NCBI RefSeq assembly: GCF_006345805.1
Contig: NW_021832844.1
Location: 1-64,000, forward strand
DNA from: Octopus sinensis
Lineage: Eukaryota
Reading direction: 5' to 3'
Length of the DNA stretch: 64,000 bases
The translations under genes and the position numbers were made by a program. The notes beneath the pieces were generated by a model, which searched no databases, was not told where the DNA came from, and was given only the letters and a program-made list of their open reading frames with translations. The first letter of the stretch is position 1; the number at the start of each line of letters is the position of its first letter. Shown piece by piece: positions 7,384 to 53,713 of the stretch.

Positions 7384-7499
7384 GTTGTTTTTAGTTGATG
7401 TTCTTTTGTATTCGAGTGTTACTGATTCCAGCTTCAGTGAGAGGACATCCAAATATTTCTAGTTGTTCTGATTTGGTTTCTGTGAGGATGATCTCTCTG

Positions 7500-16985: not shown

Positions 16986-17049
16986 CGACGCTTTGGACTG
17001 TTAATGGTGTGATCCTTTTGGATCTGCCGGCTTTTAGCCTTGGCCGCCT

Positions 17050-25148: not shown

Positions 25149-25260
25149 TTACTGACTGTTTTACTAATATTGTTTTGATTAATTTAATTATTTATTTAAA
25201 TGTTTTTTGGTTAGATATTAAATAATGTAGTGACGTAATATTACATTAGTTGTTGGTGGT

Positions 25261-26890: not shown

Positions 26891-26984
26891 CTCATTATTC
26901 TTTCCTTCAATATTATTGTCTATTGAAACTTGTATTGGGTACATAGATTTTTATTTTTTCAAAATAGACTATCATTGCGTAGAG

Positions 26985-27990
26985 CAGGCATTCTCAACCT
27001 TTTTTTGTTCATCGCCCCCTTAGATATTTTATCGCCCCCTTGTCCACATACAATTTAAAAATTTTTGGTAATTGTCCTTTAATTGGTTGTTTTTTGTATA
27101 TAACTCAAAAATCAAAATATAAAATAATAAATCAAATGTAAAAAATTGAATTTTTATTAAAAATTATTAGTGAGACCCTTGATATTGATGTTTACTCGCT
27201 AAATATTCTATGTCGGGTTTAATTCTGCTCAACTTTAGGCGCATATCGCCTCTATAAGACACTTCCAGTCTATTTCTTTCACATTGTGTATTATTAAAAC
27301 TTCGAAAATAACCTCACAAATCCCATTAAAACAGCTTTACTATCTACAATGACGCTTTCATCGATTTGTAATGAAAACTTACTTCGCTTCAGTCTTTCAA
27401 TAAGGATTTCCTTTACATTTTCATTCTTCGACGAATCGAATCATTGCTAAGAGGTAGACTTTTAATAATTTTAGAAGCATCTTGATTTATTACATCCGAC
27501 ATTATTACTTCCAGTGATGGAATTATTACATTTTCTGCGATAGTATGAGAACTTGAAGTTTTTGCAATAATTTCAGCAATTTTATAAGATGCGATGTGCG
27601 CACCCACAACTACATATTAATAAATGTTAAATAACCATCATGTACTGGCTTTGTGAATAACGATTTGATCTTTTTCTTATTTTCAAAATTGTATTTTAAA
27701 TTTTGAAAATATTCAATCGGCTTTGACATTTTTACCGGGTGCTTGCGTTTTAGATGATCCTGTAATCGTGATGGCTTCATCGCCTTATTTGAAAAAGAAC
27801 ATTGACAAATAAGACAATAAGGCTGTTTTGTATCTTCAGTACTTTGAATAGTTGAAACCACATTAGCACAATCATTAACACAATTTACCACCAATTGACA
27901 GCGCAATCAGAAGAATTTGCGTAAAAATATTAACTATTTAGTTAAGTTTTTCGTAAAGATAGAATTTATTTTCGGTATGCCTCTTTTCCT
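26985..27990 (-). mobile_element. hAT (Charlie/ZBED5-like) element copy 1: 3' end present, catalytic core deleted, 5' TIR missing
   Basis: End CAGGCATTCTCAACC preceded by GCGTAGAG; about 95% identical to 43793-44033. BED finger PYCLIC...MKPSRLQDHL...HP and LPLSNDSIRRR. Confidence 0.9.
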
Positions 27991-28279
27991 AAACTTTTTT
28001 ATTATTCAAAAATAATTTTTTCAATAGATAACCGAAGGAGGAAAAACGAAGCTGAAGAAAAAACGGTCAGCTTAAGGTAATTAATTAAATCTTTTTTGTG
28101 TGTCGCTTTTTTGGCTGCTGCTACTCTGCCTGCCCCATTTCCGCCTGCCCCATTTTCGCCAGTGGTTTGTCTAATCAAGGTCACTAAGCTAAATCTCCGG
28201 ACTATAAAGGCTCTTAAGCATTATCTTAATTGGCTGTTAAAAAAATTAGACAGGTTGTTGCCGTGGCGGCAGAGATTTT

Positions 28280-30965
28280 TTGTTGTTGTTGTTGCATAAC
28301 CCCGGTCTCACATTAGGGTATGAGACCGGCGGCTAGCAGAAACAACAGCGCCTTCGCGGGTTGCTCCCAAAGGACCTCGGGGGAGTGGACAGCAAATTTC
28401 CTGCGGACAGGGAGGAGAACAGGGCAGCGGAAAAGGTGATCAGTTGAGTGATCTTCGGCACAGCAGAGGTTGCATACCGGGGAGATCACGGCGTTCAATG
28501 AGTGAGCGTAGGAGTTTAGTGAGTGGTGGTGGCCCGAGCGGAAACGAGCAAGGTTGATCTGAGCGGAACGCTCCAGAAGCATTTCGGAGGGGTGAACTTC
28601 CGGAGGAAGTTTGTCGAGGACAGAGTTAGGCTTCAGCCTTAGAATGGACGACGTTGAAATGAAGTCGTGGATTTTTTTCATTGGCTGTGAACATTGGTTT
28701 AGGCCAGGGGTCACCAAACTTTTTGCACTCGCGGGCCGGATTGACCCCAACACAATGAACGCGGGCCGGAGCACGTGCATAAGATTATAATTTTACTAGA
28801 AATTCATAAGTGTGTTTTTTACAATAAAAACTAATTTAAACAAAAATAAAGTAAACAAAAATTTTAATGAGAGCTATGGAACTGTGATCTTTTTTTGATA
28901 AGTTCATCAATATTTGGTTTTAAATTGCTGCATCCTATCATGAGAATTGATTTTAAGTGTCCGTCAGTCAATCTTGCACGATGGGCAGACTTAACATATT
29001 TCATCCTCGAAAACGTTTGCTCACATTGGTAAGTTGTGCCAAATATAGAAATCATCTTTATCGCAAAATTCTTTAGTCTCGGAAACTCATCATCCTTGAG
29101 ATATTCGTAGAACTCAGCGAGTTTGGTCCGTCTGTGACAATCTTTGAGCTGTTCATTTGATTGTAAGTCAATAACTTCTAATTGTAATTCATGTTGAACA
29201 TTTTCAACATTACAAGAAAATGGATTTTCGAACAAAATTATATCGCTTTCAATTTTGTCAAGTTCAGAAAACTTATGTAAAAAATGATGTTTTAATTCTT
29301 TGATAATTCCAGTTTGGAAAGTAATGTCGATCTCATTACAGTTTGCCTCACAAAAACTTTTAAAACAAGAAAAGTGTGAAAACTGACGTACTCCAAGTTG
29401 TGACTCGAATAACATCAATTTTTGTCGAAATGCTTTAATTATCCTGTAGAAATCACAAATTAAGTTTTCCTTTCCTTGTAATTTCAGATTTAGCTCATTC
29501 ATGTGAGTTGTAACATCAACCAAAAATGATAATTTTGATAGCCAAGCAAGATCTGATAATTCGGGATAATAGTTATTTTTACTGGTTAGAAAAATATCAA
29601 TCTCACTTCGGAGTTTATAAAATCTATTTAATACATTACCACAGCTAAGCCATCTAACTGCAGTGTAATATGGTAAGTCAAAATATTCAGATCCAAAATC
29701 GTCAAGTAAAACTTTAAACTGACGGTGATTAAGTGAGCTCCCTCGAACAAAGTTTATTATGCGAATAACTGGATTCAACACACATGAAATATTAAGAGCC
29801 TTCGCACATAGTGCGTGCTGATGAAGGATGCAATGAATGAACAAAGTGTTTGAAATATGTAATTCCTCCAATTTATTAGTTATTTGCCCAACTAGACCCT
29901 TTTTAGAACCAGCCATATTCTTTGCCCCGTCAATCGTAACAAAACTTTAGGCCATTGATTTTGGCAAGTACCCTGGAGTATAGTTTGGCAGGCGTGTTCT
30001 TCAATGCACGGCCGTTGTCATTTAGCGTGTTTAGGGCAGTGCAAGGGTGGTAAAATTTTCGCGAAGCGAATAGGAATTGTGCTCCTCTCATGTTTAGATG
30101 TTCCTCTATCGGGAGGAGATTGGTTTCACAGTGCAGATGGTCGATGGTTGTTGATTTCAGGCACCCGGATATGATGCGCATGGCTTTGTTTTGAATTGAT
30201 TGGAGAGCCACAGAGGAGCTCATAGATAGACAGGGAGCCCAACTCGGACTCGCGTAGCTTAGGACAGGGCGAATGTATTGTTTATACACACGTTTGAGAA
30301 GTGGTTTCTGCGCACCAGTGATGCGACCACTTATTGCTTTCAGGATATTTGTACGCCTGTTAGCCTTGTCAGAGATCTTCAAGACATGTTTATTGAAGAA
30401 CATCGTTGGGTCGAAGGTTAGTCCGAGAACAGTGGGGTGTTTTGATAGTGGGAGAACAGAGCCAAAGAGAGATAGGTTGGGATGTATGTTTGATTGTCTT
30501 CTGTCGGAAGATAATAGGGTGACCGAGGACTTGGAGGACGAGGCCTCGAGCCTGTTTTCTCTGAGCCAATTCTCAACGGAGTGGAGTTGTTGCTGAAGGT
30601 TGAAGGAGGCAGCTTTGTAGTCTTCGTGTTTTGAGGCAATAATAATGTTGTCAGCGTAAGATAGTGTCAAGTGGTTAGGGTTGTTTGCCGGGAAGTCGTG
30701 CAAGTAAAGATTGAACAGGGATGGAGACAGCACGGAACCCTGCGGTACCCCGTTTGGAAGGTAGCGTTGTTTGGAACAATGGTCCATGAGGGAGACGTAG
30801 CCCATGCGGCCCGATAAGAAGTTAGCAAGCCAGGATTTGTAGTTTGAGTCTAGGCCGGTCGTGAGAATTTTCTTGGTGAGACCGCAACGGGGGACGCTGT
30901 CAAAAGCTTTAGATATGTCGATGGAAGCTAGAACTGTTCGTTTAGGGGGCCTCTTCTCATTGAAG
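28280..30965 (-). mobile_element. I/Jockey-group non-LTR retroelement, RT to 3' end with (CAA)n tail, split by a hAT element
   Basis: SIDISKAFDSV, GVPQGSVLSPSLFNLY, YIRPVLSYASPSW, C-terminal CNLC...STDHLFRCP, and (TTG)5 at 28280-28294. The frame AKINGL-NQCSQP is rejoined by removing 28705-29945. Confidence 0.9.
28705..29944 (-). mobile_element. hAT transposon of a second family (GTF2IRD2-like transposase, C-terminal half), one TIR only
   Basis: End CAGGGGTCACCAAAC at 28705. Uninterrupted 350-aa ORF 28864-29916 with HCILHQ, VRWLS, FGTTYQCEQTFSRMK, RARLTDGHL. Confidence 0.9.
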
Positions 30966-31107
30966 CCGTGAAATTGAAGAATTTAAAATTTCATTATTTT
31001 TATGATTTATTTTGATTTTATTCCTTTGAAATCAGTTTCTTTTATTATTTTGACATTTTATATTGGTCCTTTATATATGAGAACTATCCAAGATTAACTA
31101 CGCTTAA

Positions 31108-31138
31108 GCGCAAAAAAACCGTTTTTCTAATTTCTCTA
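31108..31138 (+). repeat. Solo remnant of the Tc1-A left end
   Basis: GCGCAAAAAAACCGTTTTTCTAATTTCTCTA closely matches 1140-1172. Confidence 0.5.
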
Positions 31139-31282
31139 ATTTTTTCCAGGTAAGCCAGCATAATATGTGACATGGGTGGCTGGATACGCATGGGAAACCG
31201 GCTGCATTTTACCTTGAAAAATCTTAATTTAACCTTTAACAAATCATACTATTTTTACCTTTTTTTGTTACAAGAAGTTAAT

Positions 31283-31640
31283 TTATGGACAGTTAGAAAA
31301 GGGAGAAAGATTGTTGAAGACTACGCAGTTTAAGGCGTCCTCCCAGTCTCGCGGATTGCGAAGCAGTTGCCGCTGATTACGGTAATGAAGAGGCGTTGAA
31401 GAAGCCAAAAGGACTCTCTTGGGTTTTCCTCCTTTTGTCGAATCTTCTCTCCAAACCGCGTAGGAAACAAAGCTACTTTCGGCCAAAGACCCAGAGGTCT
31501 CAACGGCGATTAAGGATTTTGAAATTTTTGGCACGATTGGAAGCAAAGCCTGGGTCGACAACCGACATGGTTAGGTTCCCGTTGGAGAATGTGTCACAGC
31601 AGGTAGAATCCCATATAAGAGATTTTCCCTGCTCGAAGAG
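31283..31640 (-). mobile_element. CRE-like retroelement endonuclease fragment
   Basis: VWDSTCCDTFS and LIAVETSGSL motifs. Confidence 0.7.
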
Positions 31641-32414
31641 GAATATAGGGCCGTTTTACCTGAATTATCTCGACTCGATTATTTGATAAAATGTTGATTA
31701 TTTCGGCAGCCGGATAGAATGGAGAGTCGAATTTATCTAGCCGCAACGAAGGATTTGTTACATAGTCTTTTTTAACTCGAACCTAACTATAATTTTTTAT
31801 TTAAACTTTATCTCCGACACTAAATTCGTATTTACTATTGTGAACATTTATTTTTCTATTTATTGCCTTATAGTAGGCTGAGTTTCCATCAATAGAATTT
31901 AAATTAAATTTGAATTTTTTGGACTTGGTAAATTAAAATCCCCAAATATAAATTTCAAGTTAAAATACTTGAATTTTCAATTCAGTCTAAATTCGAACAA
32001 ATTTCTAAATTTCAATATTTTCTAAAAACACAATTCGATATTTATGATTTGCAACAGCATCTTTTATTCAGCTTATCCCTTGATATTTTCCCTCGAAAGG
32101 TCTCTAATTTGAAAATGAGTGTACAGCCTTGTTATAGCAGTACACTGCATTTTCAAAATCTATAGCCACTTTTTTTAATCTGTTTCTATCATTTTGGAAA
32201 GTTTTCGGGTGATCGTTTGTTTAAAAAATTCTACAATCCCTTGTGTACGGGGATTTTTTGGTCTTCTATGTATCTGAACTACGTTGAACTCTTTGCATGA
32301 ATTTCTCAGAAAAACATTTTTATATTCTGAATTATTATCTGATTGCAAAATTTTGCAAGGTCTAGAAAAAAATCTTAAGTTGTTGCATACTTCTTTTGAA
32401 AATTTATTTATTAT

Positions 32415-32660
32415 TTATTTATTAATGACCAAGAGACCAGGTAAGCCAGTTAATTATAATCCCCGCGAGTCCCCGATTCAAACGAGGGAGATCTTTCTGA
32501 AAGGTTCGATCCTGTCCACGTGATCGGACTGAGACGACGATGTCCCACGGTCAGAGTTCTAGAAGTCCTTTTTCGGTAGGCATTAAGTGCCTTCTGAGCG
32601 TTTCCATGTCCGATTAGAAGTTTTAACTGACATGGTGGACCCCATAACGCCACGCTAAGA
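32415..32660 (-). mobile_element. 5'-truncated LINE 3' end with (TAAA)n tail
   Basis: Shares the terminal ATTATAATTAACTGG(C/T)TT...TTGGTC and the upstream sequence with 44034-44182 and 60433-60590. Confidence 0.7.
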
Positions 32661-32699
32661 CCGGAAAGAAGGTAAGAGACCCCTTTTTTTCTACTTTGT

Positions 32700-33610
32700 C
32701 GTGCCAGAAGTACTCATTGCCTCGCGGGCAGGCGAACGATAACGAGAATTGACCCCAGAATGAAACTAGCCTCCCTCGGAATCGGAAATGTATACGATAC
32801 CAAGTTCTATCGAACTGGACTTCCCAGAGAAAGTGAAAGGCCTGTAGTAACTGTGTACGTTTTCCTGCAAGCATCGTTAGAGTCGGGTTGCTTGTGAGTG
32901 CAAGCTAAAGTGGGTGGAAAGCTTCACCTAAGACTAAAAAATGCACGAGTTCGATAGCGAACAAGTACCGTGAAGGAAAATTGAAAAGAACTTTGAGAAA
33001 AGGGTTAAAAGTGCGTGAAACCGTTTAGAAGGAAGCAGATAGAGCCTTGACGCTTTGTTTTACAGTTGGGACGCAAAGCAGCTGTAATGAGTGTTCTAAC
33101 TGGTTGCTAGTTTGGATGTGCCCTTTTGATGGCTGTGTATACTTTATTGTTAGGGTAATGATTCTTGCAGCTTGTTGGTGTTTTATCCGACCCGTCTTGA
33201 AACACGGACCAAGGAGATTACCGTATTAGCAAGTCTAATGGAGTTATTCCATGTGGCGTAATGAAAGTAACTGGATGTGACGGTGTTAAACCTGCAACAT
33301 ACGCCCCTAATTGTAACTACGGTTTATTAGGGAGTGTTAGCTAATGCGTTAAGACCCGAAAGATGGCGAACTATACCTGGTTAAAATGAAGCCAGTGGAA
33401 ACACTGGTAAAGGTCTATCGCGGTTCTGACGTGCAAATCGATTGTCGAAGCTGGGTATAGGGGCGAAATACTAATCGAGCCATCTAGTAGCTGGTTCTCT
33501 CCGAAATTTCTCTCAGGATAGCTGGTGTTCGTAAAAAGTTTTATATGTTAAAGCGAATGATTAGAGATCTGTGCTCAGATTGGGTGCATAGTATTCTCAA
33601 ACTTTAAAAA
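32700..33610 (+). rRNA. 28S (LSU) rRNA 5' fragment, isolated and truncated; probable rDNA pseudogene
   Basis: Universal LSU segments GAGTCGGGTTGCTTG, AACAAGTACCGTGA, CCGTCTTGAAACACGGACCAAGGAG, GACCCGAAAGATGG, GACGTGCAAATCG, CATCTAGTAGCTGGTTC. No 18S, 5.8S or 3' LSU adjacent; left boundary approximate. Confidence 0.9.
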
Positions 33611-35327
33611 CGTGAGATACGTTGACAAGTGTTTCACGGATCCAAACCAAAGAGTCGTCAAGTCCCTCCTTAGACTCCAATCTGGTCACCAGACAGTCCA
33701 AATGTGAAGACATAGCACTCCCACCCTCCAAATACTCTCCCTGCACTCACAAAATAGAAAAACCAATTCCCTGTCAATTGAAACACGCATGTCTCTCATT
33801 TTCGACTGAAAGTCCGCCTCCCGGTTGTTAAGGACGCCAATTTCAGTGGTCAAAGCTCCCACCTTGCCTTCATAAACCTCCCGAATCTTAGACAATCTGG
33901 CGACTTCTCGTGCAATGACCTCATCGCTGATCTCCTCGCAGTCCGTGAGCAAGTCTCTGACGGAAGTGAGGATCTTTTCTTTAAATTGTTCATACTAAAC
34001 CGTTTTTACATTTTGGTAACTTTATTGACTGTTTTTTGCAGTTCAAGACGGTTGGCGTTTCCCGCCTCTTCTAACTGATGGTTTTCGGTTTTGTATTTGT
34101 CAATTTGAGTTTCCAGTAGATTGCATTGCTTGGCAGTGAATTGACGTCAAAACCTCCGCGTATTTGTCTATTCTTTTCTTTTGTCTTAACATTTCCTGTC
34201 TCATAGTCGTCAAATCTGCTGTAAGCCGACGTCCTTCACTTTCTTGGATTTTTAGACTCTACAAATCAAATCGAAACAAAACATTTTGCAGACTTTCGAG
34301 AGCAGGACTGTCCTAAAATGTCATATAAATATAAATAACATCTTTTTTGCAAGAATTCTCAATCTCGACTGACTGCCGGAATATCAATTCGTCCTAAAAA
34401 TCTAAACACAGCCAATTCACCTTAGAAACTGAATCTCTTTGTAGTTGAGTAACTAATTCCTCCAATATCTTCTTATCACGGTGAACACGTTTAAATTCCG
34501 CCGAGGATGGCGACTTTGGTTCTTCCACGTTTTGGACTGATCTTGTTTCACTCAGTTTAACCTGAAAATATAAAATCACAAAACCTTGTCTGAAAGTGAG
34601 TCAATAAGAGAGTCCTTGTATGTCACCTGTTCCTCAAGTCTCTGCCGTAACTCGAGACTGTTCGCCAGCTCTTGGGCGGTGAGATCCTTTGCTTTCCTGA
34701 GGTGGTCTATCTTGCCTTCCAATTCGTGAATAATTTCTCTCTGCAGTCTCAACTCTTTGTCCTTCCTTCCACTTTCCGAAACCACATTTTTGACTCTTCT
34801 TAACTCTTCTCGGAGTTTTGTGACCTCGTCTTCTTGATGAGTCCTACTGGATGGGGACATTGGCTCACAGTGCTAAAAGTTATTTCCCGCTCTCACAATC
34901 GGTTGTCGGAGTGTAGAAAGACTCCCCGTTGGCTCGGAAAAAATTCTTCCTGGCGGAAAATTTTCAACCAATTCGGAATGACGGGTGATGGTGGGACAGT
35001 TATTTTGTACAGGTGGTATTTCTTCAAGACAGAACTCGAAAGCTGATGGTTCGAGACCAAAATTGATTATATCTCCCGGGGATAGTCTGACTGTCGTTAT
35101 TCTGTAGCCGTTCACGTGAGTGCCTGTGCGGGTGTTCAGATCTTGAAGGATAAATGAATTATTGTGTTTGGAATAGTGAATTGTGGCGTGTCTATCGTCC
35201 ACAGAACTCGACTGAATAATGTATTATTTGATACATCGATTATTAGTCCACATTGGCGGCGTCCTACAGTGGTACATTCTCCGAGTTCGTATAATATGCC
35301 ATTGCTTCTCAGATATGCACAATTCAT
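33611..35327 (-). CDS. FHAD1: Forkhead-associated domain protein 1 (FHA plus coiled coil), apparently 3'-truncated at the rDNA junction
   Basis: MNCAYLRS...TTVGR...VDDRHATI.Y...SFILQDLNTRTGTHVN...LSPGDIINFG follows the FHAD1 N-terminus. Long coiled coil; the frame runs into 28S sequence at about 33611. Confidence 0.78.
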
Positions 35328-35519
35328 GCCCAATTAAATAAGCAGCAAGAACTAATAAGCAATTTTGTTAATAAAATGTTGTCCGGGAAACATTTTATTC
35401 ATTTTTAAACCAAAACAAAGATAAATTAAATTAACTTAATTTCATAATTAGAATTTTTTTCATTATTGGACAACTAAATTGTTCTCCGGTTAATTCGACA
35501 TCTTTACTTGTCGTTTTGC

Positions 35520-35875
35520 TTTTCTACTTGTGGGGCAGTCATGAAGGATCCATTGACGGGGGAGACAACCTTGGATCAAATGCGGGTGTTGCGACGTCAT
35601 TAAATGCACGTGTGTCCATCCTTGTTGCAACCAACCCTGCTTATGGGCGATATAACCCACGCAAGTCGAATGAGCAGAATGTTCAGCTTCCGGGCGCCCT
35701 GTTGTCCCGATTCGACTTGCTTTGGCTTATGCAGGACAGAGTGGAGCACGACAGCGACCTTCGGTGTGTGTCTGAGTATATGTCCAGATTGGCACGTCAT
35801 GTGGCTTGTCTACACCAGCACGGGCGACATCCCCAAATCCATTTCAGTCCCCTTTCAATGAGAGCAATGAGATAA
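35520..35875 (+). pseudogene. MCM7: MCM7 AAA-domain fragment with internal deletion and a retained intron
   Basis: [13 protein letters not shown] is joined directly to [29 protein letters not shown]...[10 protein letters not shown]. The 24-nt intron GTGTGTGTCTGAGTATATGTCCAG is present; no other MCM7 exons seen nearby. Confidence 0.9.
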
Positions 35876-35979
35876 AATTGCAGTTGAATTATTTATTCAA
35901 ACTAGAGCAATGAGATAAAATCCAAGCATTTGGTTTTTAAAAATTGAATTTGTATATTATTTTTCAGCGGAAACAGGGC

Positions 35980-36400
35980 AGTCAATTTTAGCAGACAGAA
36001 ATTGGGATTACTTCACAACGATCCTTGAAGCATGTAGAAGTAGAGAAATTACATAAATATGACCTTTTGGCGAACGAATTGAAGGTAATCCATAATGCAA
36101 ACGTGAATGTCGTACCGTTGGTTATTATGTGGGATGGAATAACATCCAGATTCTATAAACACTACCAGAACTCCTTGCAAGTCCAGGGATCTACGCGAGC
36201 TTATATTTAGTCAATCGTGATCAAGGATCTCACATTGGAAAGCATGCGCCCGGAGTATAAACTCCTTCTTACAGCGGCGAAGCATGCAACTAAATCGGAC
36301 TCGAGAACAACCACAAAAGTGGCCTGCCCTGTAAAATGGATAAGTGTACCCGTCGAGAACATTTGCTCGGGCTCGAAGAGAAGGAGAATCGACTGAAAGC
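35980..36400 (+). mobile_element. R4/Dong-like retroelement endonuclease fragment
   Basis: EIGITSQRSLKHVEVEKLHKYDLLANEL...VVPLVIMWDG, homologous to 61273-62283. Confidence 0.8.
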
Positions 36401-36932
36401 AGACGTATTAATTAGAAATCAATTTTATCTGGACTTTTCAAATAAATTGTTTGGTAATATGATACATTAAGTATTGTTGTTATAGGAAGTATATTTGGAA
36501 AGCCTATGGGCTTGTATTTAAGATAACTAAATTAAATGACGATGATTGCACCCTCAAACAGTAGTATTTGTTTTTTTCATTCTGTTTTGGTTGGGGATTT
36601 GTTCAGGAGACTTGCTTTCTTACATTAAAAAGCTGAGAAAATCCCGAAAATGAAGTTGGACAGAATGATAATAATTTGGAGTTATTCTTGATTGATTTTT
36701 TAGTTTAAAATAAAGTCATCAATTTATTCATTCCCCCCATTATACATCTTTATTAGACAGACAAAAATATAAAAAAAAAATTTTTTATTTACGTAGAATA
36801 AAATATAAAATAATCTGAATTATTGGTTTTACCCTCAAAATGTAAATGCGACCGCTTTATTTATTCGTGCAAGTCCAAAAAACTTTCTCAATATATCTAA
36901 ATTGGAATCAACAAATAAAAATCATTAAAAAT

Positions 36933-37930
36933 TTAAACGTCAGGGCCATTGGGTACAAACGTACTAAGGATGAATTTTATGTCATCTGGCAGATCAGCCA
37001 CTTTCTGATCTTCCAAAAAGTCAAAATCATTTTCGTCCGATTTATCTCCAACTTCCTGTTCGTTCCTTTCCACCTCCGACATCACATCCAAAGGAATATC
37101 AAAGACACATTTCTCTTCTATAGTTTTGCAATCTTGGAAGATCTCTTTCAATACACACCGACTCAACGGGAAAGTCACCAGACACCTCCCCCACAGGACT
37201 ATTCAATGAACCCCCCTCACTTTCCAAATTATGTGATTCCCAAATACTATCCATTTTCGATGAGGCGACTGTCGTGCATTCCACTGACAAGTCGCGGGGC
37301 TTCGATCAGGGGATAACCCGAGAATGGACAGTTTCAGGTTCCCACACACATCGACGTACATAGACAGAATGACACTGTTCGGTGAATTGTGCAGTGCGGA
37401 ATAAGTGAAGAAAAAAAGGGGGACACTCGACGAAGTGACATGTGTGCACAAATGACATTGCAGCCTTATACAAAGCAAGACGACAATCGGGACTACTCCC
37501 CACTCCACTGCATAGCTCGAGGAAGACAAAAATCATAAACATCCCTCACCAATGAACAATCTAACGTGCGGCCAAATACAGAGAACACGGAAGAGACCAC
37601 CGCTAGTCAAGAATGCACATTATACTCACAATTCAGCATCCCCCGAATTACCGACGGTGATTGGTGAGGACAACGCAAAGCGGTCCCCTCCAACGTCACA
37701 TATTTCCGTTTTCAACGTCGTTAGTGGATGGGGACCGACACGTGCGGCCACACTGACTCTACCGTCTACAATATTACAAACCAAAACCTCATTTTTTATG
37801 ACAGAATACAAAATAGAAGAGAATATACCATAAAAGCAGCAGCCTGAAGTCAAGAAAAAACGTACAATTACAGGGAGAGACGAAGGGAAGCCCCGACAGT
37901 TGCATGTTGATCGAATCCATCTGCACATAC
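36933..37930 (-). CDS. Uncharacterised intron-containing gene
   Basis: Coding-like composition, overlapping minus-strand ORFs joinable by 22-25 nt GT-AG introns, acidic C-terminus ending at stop 36933; family not recognised. Confidence 0.4.
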
Positions 37931-38899
37931 AAATGAGGAATATTGAGCTCACAAAATAAACTTTTCTTCTAGATTTTGGTCTTGGCGGGAGAAGAGACAA
38001 ACGAATCGTCGACGGAGATGTTCTGTTTTATTTTATTGGCCAGAGTACGTACAAATGAGACTTTCTGCCGTTTCGAAAGCGTGGCGACGGATTCGTTTTT
38101 ATAGGTAATTTAATTGCTTTGAGACTGGCTGCTTATATTTGATTAATAATTCAACTTGTAAGCCATTCTACTAATGTTCTTACACGTAATTCATATCTCA
38201 CGGTTTGATAATCCCTCTGGTTAGTTAATACTCTTCTAACTTTATTAAAAATAAAGAATTGTCATCTGATCAACTTTAGTTCTCTGGACACGGTTATTAG
38301 GTACTTCAAAAAGATAATTTTGGAAGCAAGAGGATGCTATACAAACGGCATGCTGCTACTGGTCGAAGGAGGTCTGCCTTGGCCAAGGAAAGAAATCGTC
38401 TCAAGAAATCCTACGAATGACTTCAGACATGATGATCTATATCAGAACATTTTTATTTATTTATTTAAACGCCAAGACCACGATGAGAGTCAAACAAAAG
38501 TCACGTGATCCCGATGCAGTCGACGAGGGACCTCATTTTCGCTGGGTGATCTTTCCACGAGCCCACACAAGATCCCACCGAGCGGCAGGCCGTTTTTGAC
38601 AGAGCCGGATTAAAGTGTTTGAAATTGAATCGGGTTCTTAAAACTGTAAACTGAAATCGATCAATAAGAGAAATGTGAAAAATCATTCGGCACGCAGCAA
38701 AGAGCAATTAAACTGCATCTGCAGAGGAATATATTCAAAAGGGTTGAATAATCTGATAAAGTTCTATGCGAAAATATCACATAAAAAAGAGAGAAAATCT
38801 GACACAGCACCCTAAAACATAAGAAACGGTCAGCACCTTTTTTTTCGGTGAGAGATGTAGGATACTTCAATAAACCCAAATGTGATACCGTCATTATGG

Positions 38900-39400
38900 A
38901 CACAGCCATTTATAAAGAAACGACTCTCCATCTTTCATACCGGTTATGGTTCTTGGAAGAATAAAAGAATTTTTACCATAAAGGTCTTTTCAATATAGGT
39001 TTAAGGAGAAGTCCACGTCTACATGCTTAAAAACATTCACTGATTTCATTCTTACTGGATTTGCAAGTAAACCGAAACACTTAAAAAGTTTTCTTTATTC
39101 TGTCGGCATACACAAAGCCTTTAACTTTGTCTCAAGGAGAATTCTATCAAAGAAATTAATTCCAGGGAAGCTCAAATTATAAATTTCACCTTTTAAGTGG
39201 AAAAAGGAAAAGGGTGTGACTTGAAGGCCTGAAGTCTACGTATCATCTTCCGCCCAACAGAGTACCTCAGGGATCCTCTTTATCTTTGGCCCTTTTCAAC
39301 TTCTTCCTGGAAGATCTTCCGCCCCCTACTGACAATAATGATTTCATCCTATTTTATGCGGATGACATCGTATTGGCCCCACGGGATCTCCACAAGTGAA
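38900..39400 (+). mobile_element. Degenerate non-LTR reverse transcriptase fragment
   Basis: HKAFNFV, VPQGSSLS and ILFYADDIVL motifs on the plus strand. Confidence 0.55.
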
Positions 39401-40269
39401 GAGTACTTCCGCATCTTTTTGCATTAAGAAATTGTGGCGATTGATCCAGAGGCGGTTTACAATAAATGTGTTTTCTCTCTTGAAAGAAAACACAGTGATA
39501 CAGTCCTGTTTTTTCCCATCTCCCCAATCGATCCCAGTAGGTTCAACTATGAAGAAGATTCCGAAGACTTCCAAAAGCTCTCCTGATAAGGTTAATGGCT
39601 TATTTGATAATAAAAATTTCTAAGCTTTTGCCTAGATAGACAAACTAATCACTTTATGTTTGTCATTTTTAATTTCATATCATTAAAGTTTTATTTTTGT
39701 GGCATTATTTTGAGTAAGGAATAATCTATTTTTCATACATTTGCGAAGAGTTTAAAATTTTAGAATACAAATAAAGTCAAACCCCGTTTACTTGCCAAAT
39801 TTTAGACCAAGCCAAAAGATGGAGATTAACTGAATTTAACGAGTAACTGAATAATCAATAAAAATTTTATATGCACAAAATTTAAAAATAATTAAACTAA
39901 ATAAGTAAGGGGGCTAAACCAATAAAGATAAAGAACATGGTTTTATGGTTTATAACATAATGATGGAACTGAAAAATTTATAAAATCTGATTAAAAAGTT
40001 GTTTTAATCCAATAGTACTAAACTGCATTATTTTATTTTTGAACTATAGTGATCTAAAACAGATGTTTAGCCTAAATTCCAGTCTTTTTGACAAATTAAA
40101 TTTTAAAAATCCACCTAACTCTATTTTGCGAGAATAAATTTTTCTTTGATCTTATTTCTTAAAACCGTACTACAATTTCATACTCTACCGTCTTTGATGT
40201 TGTAGTTATAATTTTACGTCGCGATTAAAGTGATATTTATGAATATACCAACGTGTTAAATTGATAAAA

Positions 40270-41044
40270 ATGTTTCGAATGGTAGCTTTGAATTTTCTAA
40301 TTTCGTCTTAGAATGAGATAAGTAGGACAACTGTGGTGGCCCTATCCTATTTTGGAGGGGTTGTTCTTGCTGCAGATAGCAGAACAACCCAAAATCCGAA
40401 TACTCGGAACGAAACCTGTAATAAATTGTTCAACTAACAAATTAGATAACAACATTACAAAGAAAATATTTCAAATTACAATCAACTCGATTGTAGGGTT
40501 CTCGGGGAACATGTATGTTTGTGAAATATTGTTGGATGCATGTCGTTCTAAATATTTGTATTTTTCTGATTAATTTGTTATTTAGATTCGCCCAACATGT
40601 CGAACCATGGACTTTAGCAATGTTCATTAAAAAAATTTTGGCAAAATACAAACATCCAAATCTATTGTCGGTATATTTTATTTTTTTATATTTTTAGGGC
40701 GTGGTTCTTGTATGTCTTTATAACGGTAGAACCTACACAGTTAGGATTAATTCCTTTGAATTTGTGGACAAATTAAATTTCCCGACGGCAATGGGATCTG
40801 GACAAATCTTCGCATTGGAGTGGATATTCAGCCAGTATTTCTGTATAATTATTGGCAGTTACCCCGGAGGATTTATAACGCAAAGTGAGGCGATTAAAGT
40901 AGCCCACGATGCAATAAATTATGCTGCGCGAAAAGACCGATTCACAGGAGGATTTTCCCAAAGTATATTTTAATAAATAATATCTTAGTTTACACAATAT
41001 CTTCATCTGGGATTAGTTTTGTGGGGGCAACCCAACTAAACTAA
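40270..41044 (+). CDS. PSMB5: Divergent proteasome beta5-like subunit
   Basis: Spliced: MFRMNEISR-TTVVALSYFGGVVLAADSRTT...KKIFQI...FSGN...KYKHPNLLSGVVLV...AMGSG...AINYAARKDRFTGG...IYTISSSG. Introns about 24-30 nt; stop TAA 41042-41044. Orthology to beta5 rather than a paralogue is uncertain. Confidence 0.78.
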
Positions 41045-41568
41045 TTGAAAAAAAATCTAGAAACCGAAACCTTTGATGTAATTGGTTTAACGAATTTTGT
41101 GCCTCTTATAAAATAAATATTTTTCATTTCTTTCCTTACAGTTGTAAGTTGAAACATATTGGTGGCGAATGGTAATCAAAAAACACTCATTTCTTTTTCA
41201 AGTTCACTTCAAAAAGTATCTCAAATTGTCAGAAATCATGTTGTTTTCTTTTTGTATCGATTCATATCAGCATTCGATGTGCGGAAAGCAATGTCTTGGG
41301 GAAACTTTTCTAACAAGCCTGCCACAATACTCATAATAGTAAATAATTAACATTTAGGAGACGTAATTTTAAATATTATAAAATTAAGTTGTAATATTTT
41401 TCTAATAATTTTTTAAATATATATTAAAATTATTTTAATAAATTTTGTTTCCTTTGTTGTTGTACTTTTTTAAATGCAATTACATTTTAGCTCAATAGAT
41501 AACACAACAGGCTGATTGTTTTTTAATTACGCTGTTAGATTATACGCAGGAAGAATTATTGGAAATTA

Positions 41569-42078
41569 GTGATACATTACATCTTGGCTCAAGAGAAAAC
41601 ACAACAGGCTGTTTGTTTTTTAATTACGCTGTTAGGTTATACGCATAAAGAATTATCGAAAATTCTTGATAAATTGATTTCTCCGCGATGTAAGTTCACA
41701 TTTTCCAGTCCTGAAATTCAACATATGCTGTCACATAGCGAAAAAGAGTATATAAAAAATAACAACCTTCTCCACAAGAGAGTCACAGCAGAAACATTCG
41801 GAGGTGAAGAGCTTGGAAGATGCGTATATTGTGGCAGGCTCATTCGAAAAGCTTCCCCAAGTACAGTTGTACTTTGTGAGGATTGTCCCGGACATATTCG
41901 TTGCCTAAGATTTGTGAATGGAGATGACCATTTTTTAATGTATTCAAAATCCGAACAACAAAAGGTCGTAAATTTTTTTCCCAAAAAAGATAAGCTCGCA
42001 AATTTTTTTTCCGAACCAGATAACGTCGCAACATCTCTTGAATACCAACAAAAAGCCAAATTATTTGGTTTTTATTAA
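41569..42078 (+). CDS. Orphan ORF with a CxxC...CxxC..HxxC cluster
   Basis: About 165 open codons containing CVYC-x13-CEDC-PG-HIRC; upstream partial duplication and an inverted remnant nearby. Confidence 0.35.
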   Translation: MIHYILAQEKTQQAVCFLITLLGYTHKELSKILDKLISPRCKFTFSSPEIQHMLSHSEKEYIKNNNLLHKRVTAETFGGEELGRCVYCGRLIRKASPSTVVLCEDCPGHIRCLRFVNGDDHFLMYSKSEQQKVVNFFPKKDKLANFFSEPDNVATSLEYQQKAKLFGFY

Positions 42079-42183
42079 TTGGTTTAATAAATTTCATTGG
42101 TTTTGTTTAATAAATTTCATGGTTTAATTGAGAAATTAGTTTACTTCCTTCCTTGTAGAATGTTTTTTCCATGATGTTTCACA

Positions 42184-42553
42184 ATATGGAAATTTCCAAA
42201 TTCAATATGGGATTTCCAAGTTCAAAGTGGGATTTCCAAGTTCAATATGGAAATTTCCAAGAATTTCCAAGTTCAAATTTTTAAATTCAATATGGGATTT
42301 CCATGTTCAAAGTGGGATTTCCAAGTTCAAATTTCCAAATTCAATATTGGATTTCCATGTTCAAAGTGGGATTTCCAAGTTCAAATTTCCAAATTCAATA
42401 TTGGATTTCCATGTTCAAAGTGGGATTTCCAAGTTCAATATGAAAATTTCCAAGGATTTCCAAGTTCAAATTTCCAAATTCAATATGGAAATTTCCAAAT
42501 TCAATATTGGATTTCCATGTTCAAAGTGGGATTTCCAAGTTCAATATGGAAAT
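42184..42553. repeat. Minisatellite, left arm (14-21 bp ATTTCCA-core subunits; 54- and 106-bp higher-order units)
   Basis: Tandem variants of TTCAATATGGGATTTCCAAG, TTCAAAGTGGGATTTCCAAG and TTCAAATTTCCAAA. Confidence 0.95.
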
Positions 42554-43445
42554 ACCCTGTTGCTGTTCTCGCCTGGAGATCGCTCGGACTTGGCCTTCCG
42601 GAGATTCCTTCAATACAGAAGAGTTGGGATGTCATCCGGTGCACACACCTGTTGGAGAGTCTTCGCACGCGAGTCGACCAGTTGGAACTGGCTTCTTTGA
42701 ACTGTGCCTGTCAGCCTCACTCAGGAGACTGGCTAAACGCACTTCCGTTGGCGTCCAATGGTCTGCTTATGGAAGACGAAACTATACGTATCGGAGTGTG
42801 TCTTCGACTTGGACTTGAAATCTGCCAACCTCACCGTTGTCGCTGTGGTTTTTTGATTCCTTCGAACGGTTTACACGCATTGTCCTGTAGGAGGAGTACT
42901 GGCCGATTTCCCCGCCACGTCCTCCTCAATGAAGTAGTGAAAAGGGCTTTGGATTCTGCGGGATTCCCATCGACCCTTGAACCTATTGTGCTCTGCCGCA
43001 GTGACGGAAAGCGTCCTGACGGGATGACTATATTCCCCTTTAGAGGAGGAAGGTCTCTTGTTTGGGATGTAACTTGCGTCGACTCCTTTTCAGATACTGT
43101 GCTCACAGGAACAGCCAGTACACCAGGCTACGCATGTGCGCTGGCAGAAGAAAGGAAGTTGACGAAGTACGCTGTGCTTCCGAACGTCGTTGAGTTTGTC
43201 CCCCTAGCCTTTGAGACTTCCGGTGTGGTTGGAAAGAAGGTAGAAAATCTGTTACGGGTTGTGGGAGGAAGAATCTCACAGAATACAAATGACCGGAGGG
43301 AGACGAGCTGGCTTTTCCAGCGCATCTCGGTTGCAATTCTTCGCGGGAACTGCCTCTCTATCCGCAGTGCTTCGTCGTCGGACTAACCCTCAAGTTCACG
43401 ACATTAATTCTCTATTCATCCTATGTTTTTCTCTTTGTCAAAATA
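42554..43445 (+). mobile_element. 5'-truncated CRE-like retroelement (thumb, CCHC knuckle, RLE) inserted in the minisatellite
   Basis: Uninterrupted GDWLNALP...CRCG...HALSC...RH, RPDG, WDVTCVD, KLTKY, FVPLAFETSG, ILRGN. 11-bp duplication AATATGGAAAT (42543-42553, 43446-43456). Confidence 0.93.
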
Positions 43446-43716
43446 AATATGGAAATTTCCAAGGATTTCCAAGTTCAAATTTCCAAATTCAATATGGAAA
43501 TTTCCAAATTCAATATTGGATTTCCATGTTCAAAGTGGGATTTCCAAGTTCAATATGGAAATTTCCAAGGATTTCCAAGTTCAAATTTCCAAATTCAATA
43601 TGGAAATTTCCAAATTCAATATTGGATTTCCATGTTCAAAGTGGGATTTCCAAGTTCAATATGGAAATTTCCAAGGATTTCCAAGTTCAAATTTCCAAAT
43701 TCAATATGGAAATTTA
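43446..43716. repeat. Minisatellite, right arm
   Basis: 106-bp units start at 43447, 43553 and 43659. Confidence 0.95.
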
Positions 43717-43719
43717 CCA

Positions 43720-43792
43720 TTTTTACCACCTATCGTGTGTAGGTTTATCTAAGGCCTCATCCTCCCGTATTCCTCTATGGAGATGTCTAGAG
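43720..43792 (+). other. PHD-finger C-terminal half, like the N-terminus of the CRE-like ORF at 8414, cut by the hAT end
   Basis: FYHLSCVGLSKASSSRIPLWRC versus FHLSCIGLKRKQAFAFQTWNC. Confidence 0.55.
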
Positions 43793-45458
43793 CAGGCATT
43801 CTCAATCTTTTTTTGTTCATCGCCCCCTTAGATATTTTATCGCCCCCTTGTCCACATATAATTTAAAATTTTTTGTGCATTGTCCCTTAATTGGTTGTTT
43901 TTTGTATATAACTCAAAAATCAAAATATAAAATAATAAATCAAATGTACAAAATTGAATTTTTATTAAAAATTATTAGTGAGCCCCTTGATATTGATGTT
44001 TACTCGCTAAATATTCTATGTCGGGTTTAATTCAGACCCTGGGACATCGTCGTCTCAGGCCGATCTTGCGGGAAGGATTGAACCTTTCAGAAGGATCTCC
44101 CTCGTTTGGATCGGCGATCACGGGAATAATTATAATTAACTGGCTTTGCCCGTGTTTGGTCTTTAAATAATAATAATAATAATAATTCTGCTCAACTTTA
44201 GGCGTATATCGCCTCTATAACACACTTCCAGTCTATTTCTTTCACATTGTGTATTATGATTGACAAAACTAAATCCACTTTCAACTAAATAAGTGGTTGG
44301 GAATGTCAATAGTACATTACTCATTTCCTTCCATAAATTTGGAAATTTCATTTGTAGATCTTTTGATTGCCAAAATTTAGAATATATCATTTTTTCGTGA
44401 AATTATCTCTTCTGCCAAAACCAAGTCTTCTTCAGTCTGCAAAAATGCGACTATTGCATCGTAAAAATTAACAAATCTTTCTAAAGCATTTCCTTTTGAA
44501 AGCCATCTTACTTCCGTGTGTAATAAAAGTCGAATAAAATCTTCACAAGCATCCTTACAAAACTTTCTAAAAAGACGATCACATTTGCTTCGTGTTTTAT
44601 TCTGTTAATTGTTTTAATTACAATATTTAAAGATTGATGTAAATCAGGACATATAATCTTCGATACCAGTTGATGGCGATGTAAAATACAATGAACCGTA
44701 ATGACCCATGGATAATCTTTTTTAATAAGAGAAACAAATCCCTTATATCTTCCAACCATTGACATAGCACCATCAGTCGCACATGAAACCAAATTTTCAA
44801 ATAATATTCCATTTGTTTCAAAAAACCCTTTTACTACGGAATATATTGACATTCCAGTTGTACAGGTTTCCAATAATTCGACAAACAATAAATCCTCATT
44901 TAATACACATTCATTATCGAAATACCTAAATTTTATTAAAACTTCGAAAATAACCTCACAAATCCCATTAAAACAGCTTTACTATCTACAATGACGCTTT
45001 CATCAAGTTGTAATGAAAACTTAATTCGCTTCAGTCTTTCAATAAGGATTTCCTTTACATTGTCACCCATTTCATCAATTCTTCGACGAATCGAATCATT
45101 GCTAAGAGGTAAGAGGTAGACTTTTAATAATTTTAGAAGCATCTTGATGCATTACATCCAATATTATTACTTCCAGTGATGGAATTATTACATTTTCTGC
45201 GATAGTATGAGAACTGGAAGTTTTCGCAATAATTTCAGCAATTTTATAAGAAGCGATGTGCGCACCCACAACTACATATAAATAAATGTTAAATAACCAT
45301 CATGTACTGGCTTTGTGAATAACGATTTGATCGTTTTCTTATTTTCAAATTCGAATATTTTATTAAATATATTATCGCCCCCCTGTACAAAATTATCGCC
45401 CCCCTGTACAAAATTTTCGCCCCTAGGGGGGCGATTCGCCCCCGGTTGAGAACACCTG
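43793..45458 (-). mobile_element. hAT (Charlie/ZBED5-like) element copy 2: both ends present, BED finger deleted
   Basis: Ends CAGGCATTCTCAATC (43793) and CAGGTGTTCTCAACC (reverse complement, ending 45458), subterminal ATCGCCCCC repeats. FSLQLDES, ATDGAMSMVG, HCILHRHQL, FPTTYLVESGFS. Confidence 0.93.
44034..44182 (+). mobile_element. 5'-truncated LINE 3' end with (TAA)n tail inserted in hAT copy 2
   Basis: TSD TAATTC (44028-44033, 44183-44188); the empty site GGGTTTAATTCTGCTC is seen in hAT copy 1. Confidence 0.88.
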
Positions 45459-45706
45459 GCGTAGAGTTTGTTTTTAAAATAGTGGAAAATTCAGATTTCA
45501 GTACATCATTGTTTATTGAAATTAAGTAGTTTTTAAACGACATTGTAAGACGGGATACATTGGTCAATTACTAAGTTTACTATTTTAACATCAATTGATT
45601 CAAGTTTCTATTTCTTAGTAAATATATTAATGATATTCATAGATCACTTCTATTGACAACATCAAGTCTCGTCCAGATTAGTGAATTTGTTTGATAAATC
45701 AGTGTA

Positions 45707-48060: not shown

Positions 48061-48384
48061 AGATTTTTTTAATTACTAAAAATTATTAATGCACTTTTAT
48101 TTTTTATGTCTGTACAAAACTAAATTCATTAATAACCTTAACCCAAAACTAAAATAAATCCGAAAGTTGGAAAGGTTTTGAAACATGTCGTGGTATAAAA
48201 ATTATAAATAACTAAGAAATTATCTTGATTATATCATACAAAAAACGGATTTTAAATATATTTATTTTATTAAAGTTATGATTTATAAAATAAAATATCA
48301 TTTCAGCGCTTGTTGTGGTGTAGTTAATTAATTATTTTATTTATTAAATATACTACTTTCATTATTTATTACAAATTAAACAGA

Positions 48385-52299: not shown

Positions 52300-53713
<1,414 letters not shown>

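Follow-up and report, generated by a model that had tools for sequence, protein, structure and literature searches.

An 18.5-kb block of predominantly repetitive DNA carries one 8-bp duplication that is common to the outward-facing ends of two hAT copies, hAT-A and hAT-B, and since the duplication is shared in this way, entry of the block as a single composite unit through the left terminus of hAT-A and the right terminus of hAT-B is the most likely explanation, which we favor with moderate confidence. Searches of the assembly for an empty site, a donor and a second copy yielded none, so that joint movement of the block is something that we infer. The block measures 18,474 bp between its outer ends at 26985 and 45458 and lies in a gap-free 64-kb window, a term used here for the whole stretch of DNA analysed. 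The elements and flanks that delimit it are the following.

26977-26984, no strand: left copy of the outer target duplication (TSD), GCGTAGAG, an 8-mer that flanks no other left end of the family in the assembly
26985-27850, minus strand: hAT-A, a fractured non-autonomous copy that retains its left TIR intact (CAGGCATTCTCAACC), with TCGCCCCC repeats in subterminal position and the remnant of a BED finger
27841-27850, no strand: 10-bp fracture microhomology ACTTTGAATA, joining hAT-A to a fragment of repeat X
43719-43788, no strand: repeat R, 70 bp, the old left flank of hAT-B, with four other copies
43785-43792, no strand: inner flank GTCTAGAG, taken to be one half of an earlier target duplication of hAT-B that has survived
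43793-45458, minus strand: hAT-B, an intact-ended deletion derivative of 1,666 bp with both TIRs and transposase remnants
45459-45466, no strand: right copy of the outer TSD, GCGTAGAG

That the outer ends form a pair with one shared 8-bp duplication is supported and statistically significant. The hAT left end CAGGCATTCTCAACC starts at 26985 with GCGTAGAG immediately upstream, and the hAT right end (...GGTTGAGAACACCTG) stops at 45458, with GCGTAGAG again directly downstream, whereas the inner left end CAGGCATTCTCAATC at 43793 is preceded by the differing 8-mer GTCTAGAG. Both copies point in the same direction and their outer termini constitute a proper inverted pair facing outward, as the original prediction had read them: the matching outer 8-mers, the differing inner flank and the single orientation all hold. 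Comparison of the window with itself aligns 26980-27225 with 43788-44033 at 96% identity and 27291-27687 with 44933-45349 at 92%. Within the window GCGTAGAG occurs twice, both times at the outer ends, and a pattern search of the whole 2.7-Gb assembly found it beside no other left end of the family, the closest left-end flanks being those of two copies with GCCTAGAG. The family to which hAT-A and hAT-B belong has the TIRs CAGGCATTCTCAA and CAGGTGTTCTCAA and subterminal TCGCCCCC repeats; the TIRs begin with CAG, CAGGCATTCTCAACC and CAGGTGTTCTCAACC are complementary at 13 of 15 positions, and this is conserved in all family copies. The expectation that hAT elements create 8-bp TSDs is borne out by perfect 8/8 flanks in 27 of 33 distinct complete copies, and in four of the 33 the flanks look unrelated. 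The target consensus of the family is nnnTAnnn: among 52 flanks, 86% have T as the fourth base and 88% have A as the fifth. Under a position matrix built from these 52 independent flanks, from which GCGTAGAG was excluded, the probability of GCGTAGAG is 1.2e-4 and that of any two duplications being identical is 7.5e-4. The original prediction had cautioned that target preference makes flanks similar, which is true for GCGTAGAG and GTCTAGAG with six of eight bases alike, and had nevertheless taken the outer match as an argument for pairing; these probabilities sustain that argument, GCGTAGAG being rare and not a common TSD of the family. Such a layout of the ends is the hallmark of an insertion made through one terminus each of two separate hAT elements.

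Of the two hAT copies originally proposed as boundaries, the right one is intact and the left one lacks its right end. In hAT-A the last ~190 bp are missing, right TIR included; it is collinear with the complete copies L002, L005, L012 and L020 (~1,036 bp) up to 27850, and homology to the family ends at 27840-27850. Past ACTTTGAATA family copies read on as ACTTTGAATAAACCC and copies of repeat X as ACTTTGATAGTTGAAACC, and the junction between hAT-A and X occurs nowhere else in the assembly. The zf-BED match in hAT-A reaches 21.3 bits, just over the Pfam cut-off, and the Dimer_Tnp_hAT match in hAT-B is weak at 17 bits and under the cut-off. In addition, hAT-B contains a 21-bp subterminal tandem repeat (45371-45423), a 150-bp foreign insert (44034-44182) and a right-end deletion junction at 45364/5 that is common to at least 12 other copies, and its last 85 bp show zero private changes in comparison to 41 family right ends. 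Since hAT-A and hAT-B are distinct deletion derivatives with 3 and 6 private substitutions, respectively, in the first 241 bp, they are two elements and not one that was duplicated. The two flanks of hAT-B, GTCTAGAG and GCGTAGAG, differ, making it an outlier for a simple insertion, and such disagreement is expected if its right end was re-inserted together with a partner end. The four other copies of repeat R diverge after 43788, which is the fourth base of GTCTAGAG (GTCT/AGAG), and the junction between R and hAT-B is single in the assembly. That homology to R ends inside the inner 8-mer of hAT-B is a mild coincidence if the block is a composite; alternatively, it may mark a repair junction.

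Typical copies of the family are 0.6-1.6 kb long and have both ends of one element. Two longer elements, of 6.1 kb at C12463:171205-177314 and of 4.7 kb at C8750:~16917-21578, likewise show perfect TSDs. They are 94-98% alike, suggesting fairly recent activity, and hAT-A and hAT-B diverge only ~1-2.5% from the family consensus. The block resembles these ordinary Buster/Charlie-type insertions in its TIRs, its TCGCCCCC repeats and its 8-bp nnnTAnnn duplication, but differs in that its ends come from two deletion derivatives 15.9 kb apart and in that it contains an extra internal left end. The Pfam search of hAT-A/B sequences gave no match to an RNase-H-like transposase core, and among the family loci examined there was no intact autonomous copy or intact open reading frame, coding remnants being decayed or interrupted. 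The target consensus nnnTAnnn was reportedly put forward by Arensburger and colleagues in 2011 as a criterion of the Buster clade, and from its target we take the family to be Buster-type.

Between hAT-A and hAT-B lies a patchwork of multicopy units, comprising LINEs, a second hAT, 28S, FHAD1/MCM and satellite sequences.

27841-28287, no strand: fragment of repeat X, 447 bp, an internal part of a larger high-copy repeat
28288-30969, minus strand: 5'-truncated LINE with RT and C-terminal domain (RVT_1 E = 1.4e-25) and a (CAA)n tail at 28288, interrupted by hAT-2
28706-29945, minus strand: hAT-2, nested in the LINE, 1.24 kb long and derived from another hAT family, with TSD TTTAGGCC and TIR CAGGGGTCACC
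32403-33622, plus strand: multicopy 28S unit, ~300 bp plus the 5' end of 28S rRNA (Rfam LSU matches at 32707-33657)
33619-36694, no strand: multicopy FHAD1/MCM mosaic unit, an FHAD1-like 5' part joined at 35575 to an MCM fragment
35998-36447, no strand: high-copy repeat of ~450 bp, with over 15 copies (89-94% identity)
38028-42180, no strand: further multicopy repeats, including the so-called beta5-like region (40322-40973), in at least 15 places at 86-95% identity
42182-42553 and 43446-43718 (within 42182-43718), plus strand: 20/106-bp satellite, split by a LINE fragment
42554-43419: young 5'-truncated LINE 3' fragment inside the satellite, with copies at 97-99% identity

Repeat X is present in at least 40 copies of 93-99% identity, and since 13 of 16 examined copies have both outer flanks in common, 27841-28287 is a fragment and not a whole element. 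Its junction with the LINE contains the microhomology TTGTT and occurs once in the assembly. Copies of this LINE elsewhere (97-100% identity) run uninterrupted across the hAT-2 site, and hAT-2, with a Dimer_Tnp_hAT match of 28 bits, has dozens of copies at 99-100% identity. The interior hAT-2 and LINE, 99-100% identical to other copies, are probably later insertions. Copies of the 28S unit on C8750, C8697 and C6303 (96-98% identity) all stop at 33622, and the unit overlaps the FHAD unit by 4 bp. The latter combines an FHAD1-like 5' part with an FHA domain on the minus strand (35223-33686; Pfam FHA 2.5e-13) with a C-terminal MCM P-loop fragment on the plus strand (35579-35875; Pfam MCM 1.4e-20) and exists in at least five copies, of which those on C8597 (98%), C8884, C2167 and C9340 begin alike at 33619-33624; the junction at 35575 is common to the copies on C8597, C2167 and C9340 and was not seen in that on C8884. 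For the LINE fragment inside the satellite, copies elsewhere have varying 5' ends and a fixed 3' end. The 28S fragment, the FHA domain, the MCM P-loop fragment and the satellite named in the original prediction are real, whereas its beta5-like gene finds no support in Pfam, the search of open reading frames in 38028-42180, this region included, having returned no match. A search for TIRs on the cargo units found nothing convincing. Essentially every tested part of the cargo is multicopy elsewhere at 86-100% identity, and the cargo, which to the original prediction looked like displaced host DNA, is not unique DNA of this kind.

How could two elements bring in the DNA between them? In the reading that we prefer, one hAT transposase reaction would have inserted 26985-45458 by pairing the left terminus of the fractured hAT-A with the right terminus of the separate, intact hAT-B, that is, by alternative transposition, and the product would be a macrotransposon or a composite insertion. 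In a macrotransposon, the interior would be the DNA that lay between hAT-A and hAT-B from the start; in a composite insertion, it would consist of the outer flanks of two reversed ends, joined anew. A staggered 8-bp cut at GCGTAGAG, once filled in, would give rise to the two outer duplications, while the inner end of hAT-B would retain half of its earlier duplication, GTCTAGAG, together with its earlier flank. The inner side of hAT-A would be an older, microhomology-mediated fracture, and the family transposase would presumably have been active at the time of insertion. The A/X, X/LINE and R/B junctions are each single in the assembly, which fits a cut-and-paste event that leaves no copy.

Alternatively, a family element may have resided at GCGTAGAG and later gained ~16.8 kb without transposition of the block, in which case the outer duplication would be that of the resident. 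We regard this as unlikely, despite the fact that it accounts for the identical outer flanks equally well. The additional DNA could have arrived by homologous integration of an excised circle with one hAT copy, by ectopic double-strand-gap or break-induced repair after an excision attempt with a distant two-hAT locus as template, or by template-switching filler synthesis. Such a history would agree with the chain of microhomologies (A/X 10 bp, X/LINE TTGTT, 28S/FHAD 4 bp), which is typical of template switching or end joining, and a repair junction would be a natural reason for homology to R ending at GTCT/AGAG, 4 bp off the tip of hAT-B. Extrachromosomal circles are moreover reported for dicyemids (PMC6543705), but the median of ~700 bp given there compares with ~17 kb needed here. 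A crossover with a circle, which the original prediction had offered as the other origin of the block, should leave a complete left copy provided with a right end and a flank of its own; these are missing from hAT-A, so the circle would require an extra deletion and this origin is unsupported. Furthermore, hAT-A is of the L002/L005 type throughout, whereas hAT-B shows the features of a separate subfamily up to ~85 bp from its tip, so that recombination with a resident element of the A type would have had to occur in these last ~85 bp. The differences between hAT-A and hAT-B are private changes, with no mosaic pattern seen. Copy-paste repair predicts a surviving template, but the A/X and R/B junctions are single in the assembly, and a filler of 16 kb far exceeds what is usual for gap repair.

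It could also be imagined that hAT-A and hAT-B inserted independently into native, repeat-rich intergenic DNA, hAT-A landing in GCGTAGAG and later losing its right end, and the flanks of hAT-B coming to differ through mutation or local rearrangement. The interior does resemble ordinary nested repeats, the preference for nnnTAnnn (often TAGAG) raises the likeness of flanks, as in the six bases that GCGTAGAG and GTCTAGAG have in common, and unrelated-looking flanks do occur, in four of the 33 complete family copies. Such a coincidence nonetheless appears very improbable, for it requires a disrupted duplication of hAT-B, as in ~10% of copies, and in addition agreement at all 8 positions with a rare 8-mer (1.2e-4 to 7.5e-4) that genome-wide is found at no other left end of the family. 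Moreover, conversion of GTCTAGAG into GCGTAGAG takes two adjacent substitutions in the vicinity of elements that are just ~1-2.5% off their consensus.

Searches for related loci bear on a possible artefact of assembly. A query with the joined flanks (...GACTATCATT-GCGTAGAG-TTTGTTTTTAAAATAG...), as the empty site would read, matched in the assembly the flanks only separately, plus a twin of the left flank (98% identity) that ends with its own contig, C12460, at the counterpart of 26948, 36 bp before the insertion site; the empty site that the original prediction had proposed to look for is thus represented by nothing beyond separate flanks and this shortened twin contig. For the right flank, the closest twin lies on C8699 and starts only 683 bp past the block, which makes it uninformative on the insertion site. 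Queries with the A/X/LINE and R/B junctions returned only themselves, so that the assembly offers no donor footprint, second composite copy or excision product, and mapping of the cargo, also proposed originally, led to no donor locus. The joint movement of 18.5 kb originally suggested is partly supported: the paired termini with one TSD stand, and movement as a unit is their likely origin. The assembly is rich in near-duplicate contigs (89-100% identity), and the end of the left-flank twin so close to the block shows that the assembly graph breaks just here. A simple hAT insertion at GCGTAGAG might have been threaded through another locus bounded by a pair of family copies, which in a mixed sample could stem from a different haplotype or strain, to yield a chimeric contig. 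We see only a slight chance of this, as both of the switches that it requires would have to fall within short homologous stretches (no longer than 417 bp, at 92%, or, for the right tip, 85 bp), the window has no gaps, and contigs of up to ~1 Mb suggest long reads that would span repeats of 1-1.7 kb.

Several further ideas did not survive: tandem duplication by unequal crossover is rejected because interior and right flank have no long repeat in common; an old element filled by nested transposable elements and then trimmed is disfavored, A/X being a microhomology to an internal repeat fragment and not to the terminus of a transposable element; cross-mobilization by the very young hAT-2 family is rejected because its TIR CAGGGGTCACC is unrelated; and a cargo of unique displaced genes is rejected in view of the multiple copies of the FHAD1/MCM unit, of the 28S unit and of the 38-42 kb region.

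Insertion of the block through paired termini of two elements has counterparts in other organisms. Since hAT-A is fractured, the nearer analogy is the maize Ac/fAc macrotransposon or composite insertion and not a pair of whole elements. Composite insertions of Ac/fAc are 14-24 kb in size, have an 8-bp TSD and consist of fAc plus flank joined to Ac plus flank (Zhang et al. 2014, PMC4270019), and Ac macrotransposons of 10-28 kb are described by Sharma and Peterson (2022, PMC9910405, citing Huang and Dooner 2008; Wang et al. 2022). Like these, the block belongs to the hAT superfamily, is bounded by one fractured and one intact separate element, has an 8-bp TSD around the whole, falls within the range of 10-28 kb, retains an old flank on the inner side of the intact element and has internal junctions with short microhomology. 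In contrast, the maize cases were seen genetically, with progenitor, donor, twin sectors and footprints, while the present case is known from its end product only, which fits direct or reversed donor ends alike. It further differs from maize in its Buster-type nnnTAnnn target, in its non-autonomous copies of ~1-1.7 kb, in its occurrence in an animal, probably a dicyemid, and in a cargo of nested repeats instead of genes and enhancers. In bacterial composite transposons and in the giant 'TE' transposons of Drosophila bounded by foldback (FB) elements, two element copies mobilize the intervening DNA, likewise as a unit with a single target duplication; unlike the single-copy block, these units are recurrently mobile, exist in several copies and employ different transposase families and chemistry. 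Reintegration of eccDNA would also leave foreign DNA between two repeat copies with common outer flanks, but the block has no circle junction and no complete left copy. The circular DNAs of dicyemids are, according to PMC6543705 (citing Noto et al. 2003), sub-kb to ~1 kb in size with a median of ~700 bp, and non-coding or mitochondrial.

The window appears to come from a dicyemid-like organism with tiny introns. The assembly, which has the size of a host genome, is probably a mixture of host and parasite in which this contig belongs to the second organism, a circumstance that matters to all users of the assembly. A SPRY/CTLH (RanBP9-like) gene lies ~90 bp upstream of the target GCGTAGAG; an exact-protein look-up of seven flank open reading frames gave no match in the protein collection, and a homology search with the RanBP9-like gene found best matches to fungal proteins at only ~30% identity, indicating that no near relative is available. 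The multicopy mosaics of FHAD1/MCM and 28S gene fragments hint at active shuffling of DNA in this genome.

In maize, alternative transposition with paired hAT ends has been proven to drive duplications, deletions and the shuffling of genes, and to our knowledge natural examples in animals are scarcely documented. We consider the chances evenly balanced that the block, now fixed, arose naturally in an animal through alternative transposition of a hAT family, a fractured and an intact Buster-type copy having moved ~16 kb, with units that carry gene fragments, to a position beside a gene in a dicyemid-like parasite. If so, a mechanism of the Ac/fAc type, so far genetically documented in maize, would also reshape metazoan genomes and would operate in the repeat-rich, highly reduced genome of a parasite, for which this locus offers a concrete place for testing.

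The 18.5-kb block is bounded by two copies of one hAT family, hAT-A on the left and hAT-B on the right, which share one orientation and whose three ends lie at the positions given by the original prediction:

begins 26985: left end of hAT-A, CAGGCATTCTCAACC, 5' flank GCGTAGAG
begins 43793: left (inner) end of hAT-B, CAGGCATTCTCAATC, 5' flank GTCTAGAG
stops at 45458: right end of hAT-B, ...GGTTGAGAACACCTG, followed by GCGTAGAG

No more TIRs of the family are found beyond these ends within the 64-kb window, in which GCGTAGAG occurs at two sites only, the two outer flanks of the block. How rare is such a shared flank? Family copies were gathered from the window's own assembly with the left end and the right end as queries, and 27 of 33 distinct complete copies (0.5–1.6 kb) show perfect 8/8 duplications, 2 further copies being 1 base off; the target consensus is nnnTAnnn, frequently TAGAG. 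A position matrix from 52 independent flanks puts the probability of GCGTAGAG at 1.2e-4 and the probability that any two duplications are identical at 7.5e-4. Moreover, pattern matching across the entire 2.72-Gb assembly revealed no other family left end beside GCGTAGAG, the closest left-end flank being GCCTAGAG (2 copies). From the flank counts and this search it follows that GCGTAGAG is not a common target duplication of the family, and the flank observation is real and statistically sound. hAT-B is an outlier in that its two flanks disagree (GTCTAGAG versus GCGTAGAG), whereas the family otherwise retains its duplications.

Elsewhere in the assembly, two left ends of the family with the identical flank CTCTAATG lie 5.8 kb apart (G000:C725:1363-1592, L016, and 7194-7424, L010), indicating that a region with a hAT end in it was duplicated in tandem. 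Two long family members also have perfect 8-bp duplications, one of 6.1 kb (G000:C12463:171205-177314, L015/L032; GCTTAATG) and one of 4.7 kb (G000:C8750:~16917-21578, L025/L053; GCCTAGAG); a foreign hAT is nested in at least one of these members, and they might represent relics of autonomous elements or additional composites.

hAT-A and hAT-B align at 96% across the first 246 bp and at 92% across 417 bp further in. They are distinct deletion derivatives with 3 and 6 private substitutions, respectively, within the first 241 bp, and therefore two elements and not one that was duplicated. hAT-B (43793–45458; 1,666 bp) has both termini, with a deletion junction at its right end (45364/5) that is common to at least 12 other copies and with zero private changes in its last 85 bp. 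hAT-A, which contains a BED-finger remnant (zf-BED profile match), is incomplete: from 26985 to 27850 it is collinear with ordinary copies of ~1,036 bp (L002, L005, L012, L020), and the expected family continuation past 27850, ACTTTGAATAAACCC with ~190 bp more up to the right TIR, is missing. The actual continuation, ACTTTGAATAGTTGAAACC, is an internal 447-bp piece of X, an unrelated high-copy repeat, and the switch from hAT-A to X falls within a 10-bp microhomology.

The interior (27851–43792, 15.9 kb) is a mosaic of repeats:

27841–28287: X fragment, 447 bp, internal to a larger repeat
28288–30969, minus strand: 5'-truncated LINE with RVT_1 match, split by hAT-2
28706–29945: hAT-2, 1.24-kb derivative of a second hAT family, TIR CAGGGGTCACC, TSD TTTAGGCC
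32403–33622: multicopy 28S unit, ~300 bp plus the 5' ~900 nt of 28S rRNA
33619–36694: FHAD1/MCM unit, FHAD1-like 5' part (FHA domain) fused at 35575 to an MCM P-loop fragment
within the interior: high-copy repeat, 450 bp
38028–42180: further multicopy sequence
42554–43419: young 5'-truncated LINE fragment, splitting a satellite
43719–43788: repeat R, 70 bp, adjoining hAT-B

hAT-2 has a recognizable TIR at one end only, and its dozens of copies are 99–100% identical, so it was mobile very recently. All other copies of the 28S unit stop at 33622, and a start at 33619–33624 is common to the four other copies of the FHAD1/MCM unit on C8597, C8884, C2167 and C9340 (89–98% identity; at least five copies in all). 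The inner junction at 35575 recurs in the C8597, C2167 and C9340 copies, with the window copy lacking ~146 bp there; this unit may be a mobile one that captures gene fragments, or else a segmental repeat. R recurs at four further places (C9497, C8744, C10278, C1995; 94–97%), and the match of these copies ends exactly at the 4th base of the inner flank GTCTAGAG of hAT-B (GTCT|AGAG). The original prediction had taken the cargo for displaced host DNA with a beta5-like gene; since the interior is a repeat mosaic and a Pfam search lent that gene no support, the cargo is not unique displaced host DNA. A 150-bp insert inside hAT-B (44029–44182) repeats the first ~155 bp of the 28S unit, inverted and at 81–85% identity. 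The satellite stretches on either side of the young LINE fragment (42437–42553, 43446–43562; 117–171 bp) are mutually 99% identical, which reflects either homogenisation of the satellite or a target duplication of unusual length.

How could such a block arise? A fractured hAT-A with intact outer end, ~16 kb, and an intact hAT-B with an older inner flank are enclosed by one 8-bp duplication, which is the layout of maize Ac/fAc alternative-transposition products. Those composite insertions are 14–24 kb long, consist of fAc plus flank and Ac plus flank bounded by an 8-bp TSD, and have joins with 0–4 bp microhomology or formed by recombination (PMC4270019); macrotransposons of 10–28 kb are known to excise and reinsert (PMC9910405). 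The best explanation, and on balance a probable one, is a single transposase reaction that would have used the left end of hAT-A together with the right end of hAT-B, the interior being either the original DNA between them or two outer flanks re-joined. Querying the assembly with both flanks joined via one GCGTAGAG matched the flanks separately and yielded no joined site, and neither exact-protein look-ups nor homology search provided a route to related genomes. The junctions of hAT-A with X, X with the LINE, the 28S unit with the FHAD1/MCM unit and R with hAT-B were each found at this locus alone. The macrotransposon reading is the best supported, by the end layout and the one outer duplication, but unproven, and as no empty site, donor or second copy was found in the assembly, it is from structure only that we infer movement of the block as a unit.

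Alternatively, a single element resident at the site may have acquired the extra DNA when a circle integrated or through ectopic repair. This would account for the matching outer flanks and agrees with the chain of microhomology junctions and with the R homology ending at GTCT|AGAG, yet is rather unlikely, as copy-paste repair predicts a surviving template, and none was found, and a crossover could fall only in the last ~85 bp. The circle proposed originally finds no support, since its integration predicts a complete left copy, whereas hAT-A is incomplete, and known dicyemid circles measure only ~0.7 kb (PMC6543705). Coincidence is very improbable, requiring a broken duplication at hAT-B as well as a rare 8-mer that matches exactly. 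An assembly chimera, which would need two switches, each inside short homology, is also highly doubtful; it is kept alive by a 98% twin of the left flank (window 25058–26948), which the joined-flank query matched at the end of G000:C12460 (..218487) and which ends with its contig 36 bp short of the block. This twin may belong to another haplotype or strain, or mark a structural difference at which the assembly graph broke. On the right, the first 682 bp of flank are unique and a 94–96% twin on C8699 begins only at 46149. Tandem duplication is excluded.

Genes of the window are all compact, with introns of ~25 bp:

10297–12718: SEC23-like gene
25234–26890: SPRY/CTLH RanBP9-like gene
48348–49832: bromodomain gene
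50320–51801: M3 oligopeptidase-like gene (M3 peptidase)
52510–53713: RBBP4-like WD40 gene

The RanBP9-like protein is just ~30% identical to its best database relatives, and there are several partial paralogues of the bromodomain region (87–96% identity). The 28S core (33250–33622) is 96–97% identical to small contigs (C8750, C8697, C6303) but only 80–82% to the chromosome-sized contigs compared (C2, C3, C4, C8, C17–20, C27, C28; coordinates up to 163 Mb), and the hAT, LINE and cargo repeats match small contigs only. Two organisms seem to be mixed in the assembly, where near-duplicate contigs (89–100% identity) may stem from haplotypes or from strains occurring together. The dicyemid genome has introns of ~38 bp, 49% repeats and an octopus host (PMC6736024); the ~25-bp introns of the window genes, together with the distant RanBP9-like relatives, the 28S contrast and the small-contig repeats, suggest that the window may come from a dicyemid-like parasite carried in a host-sized assembly.
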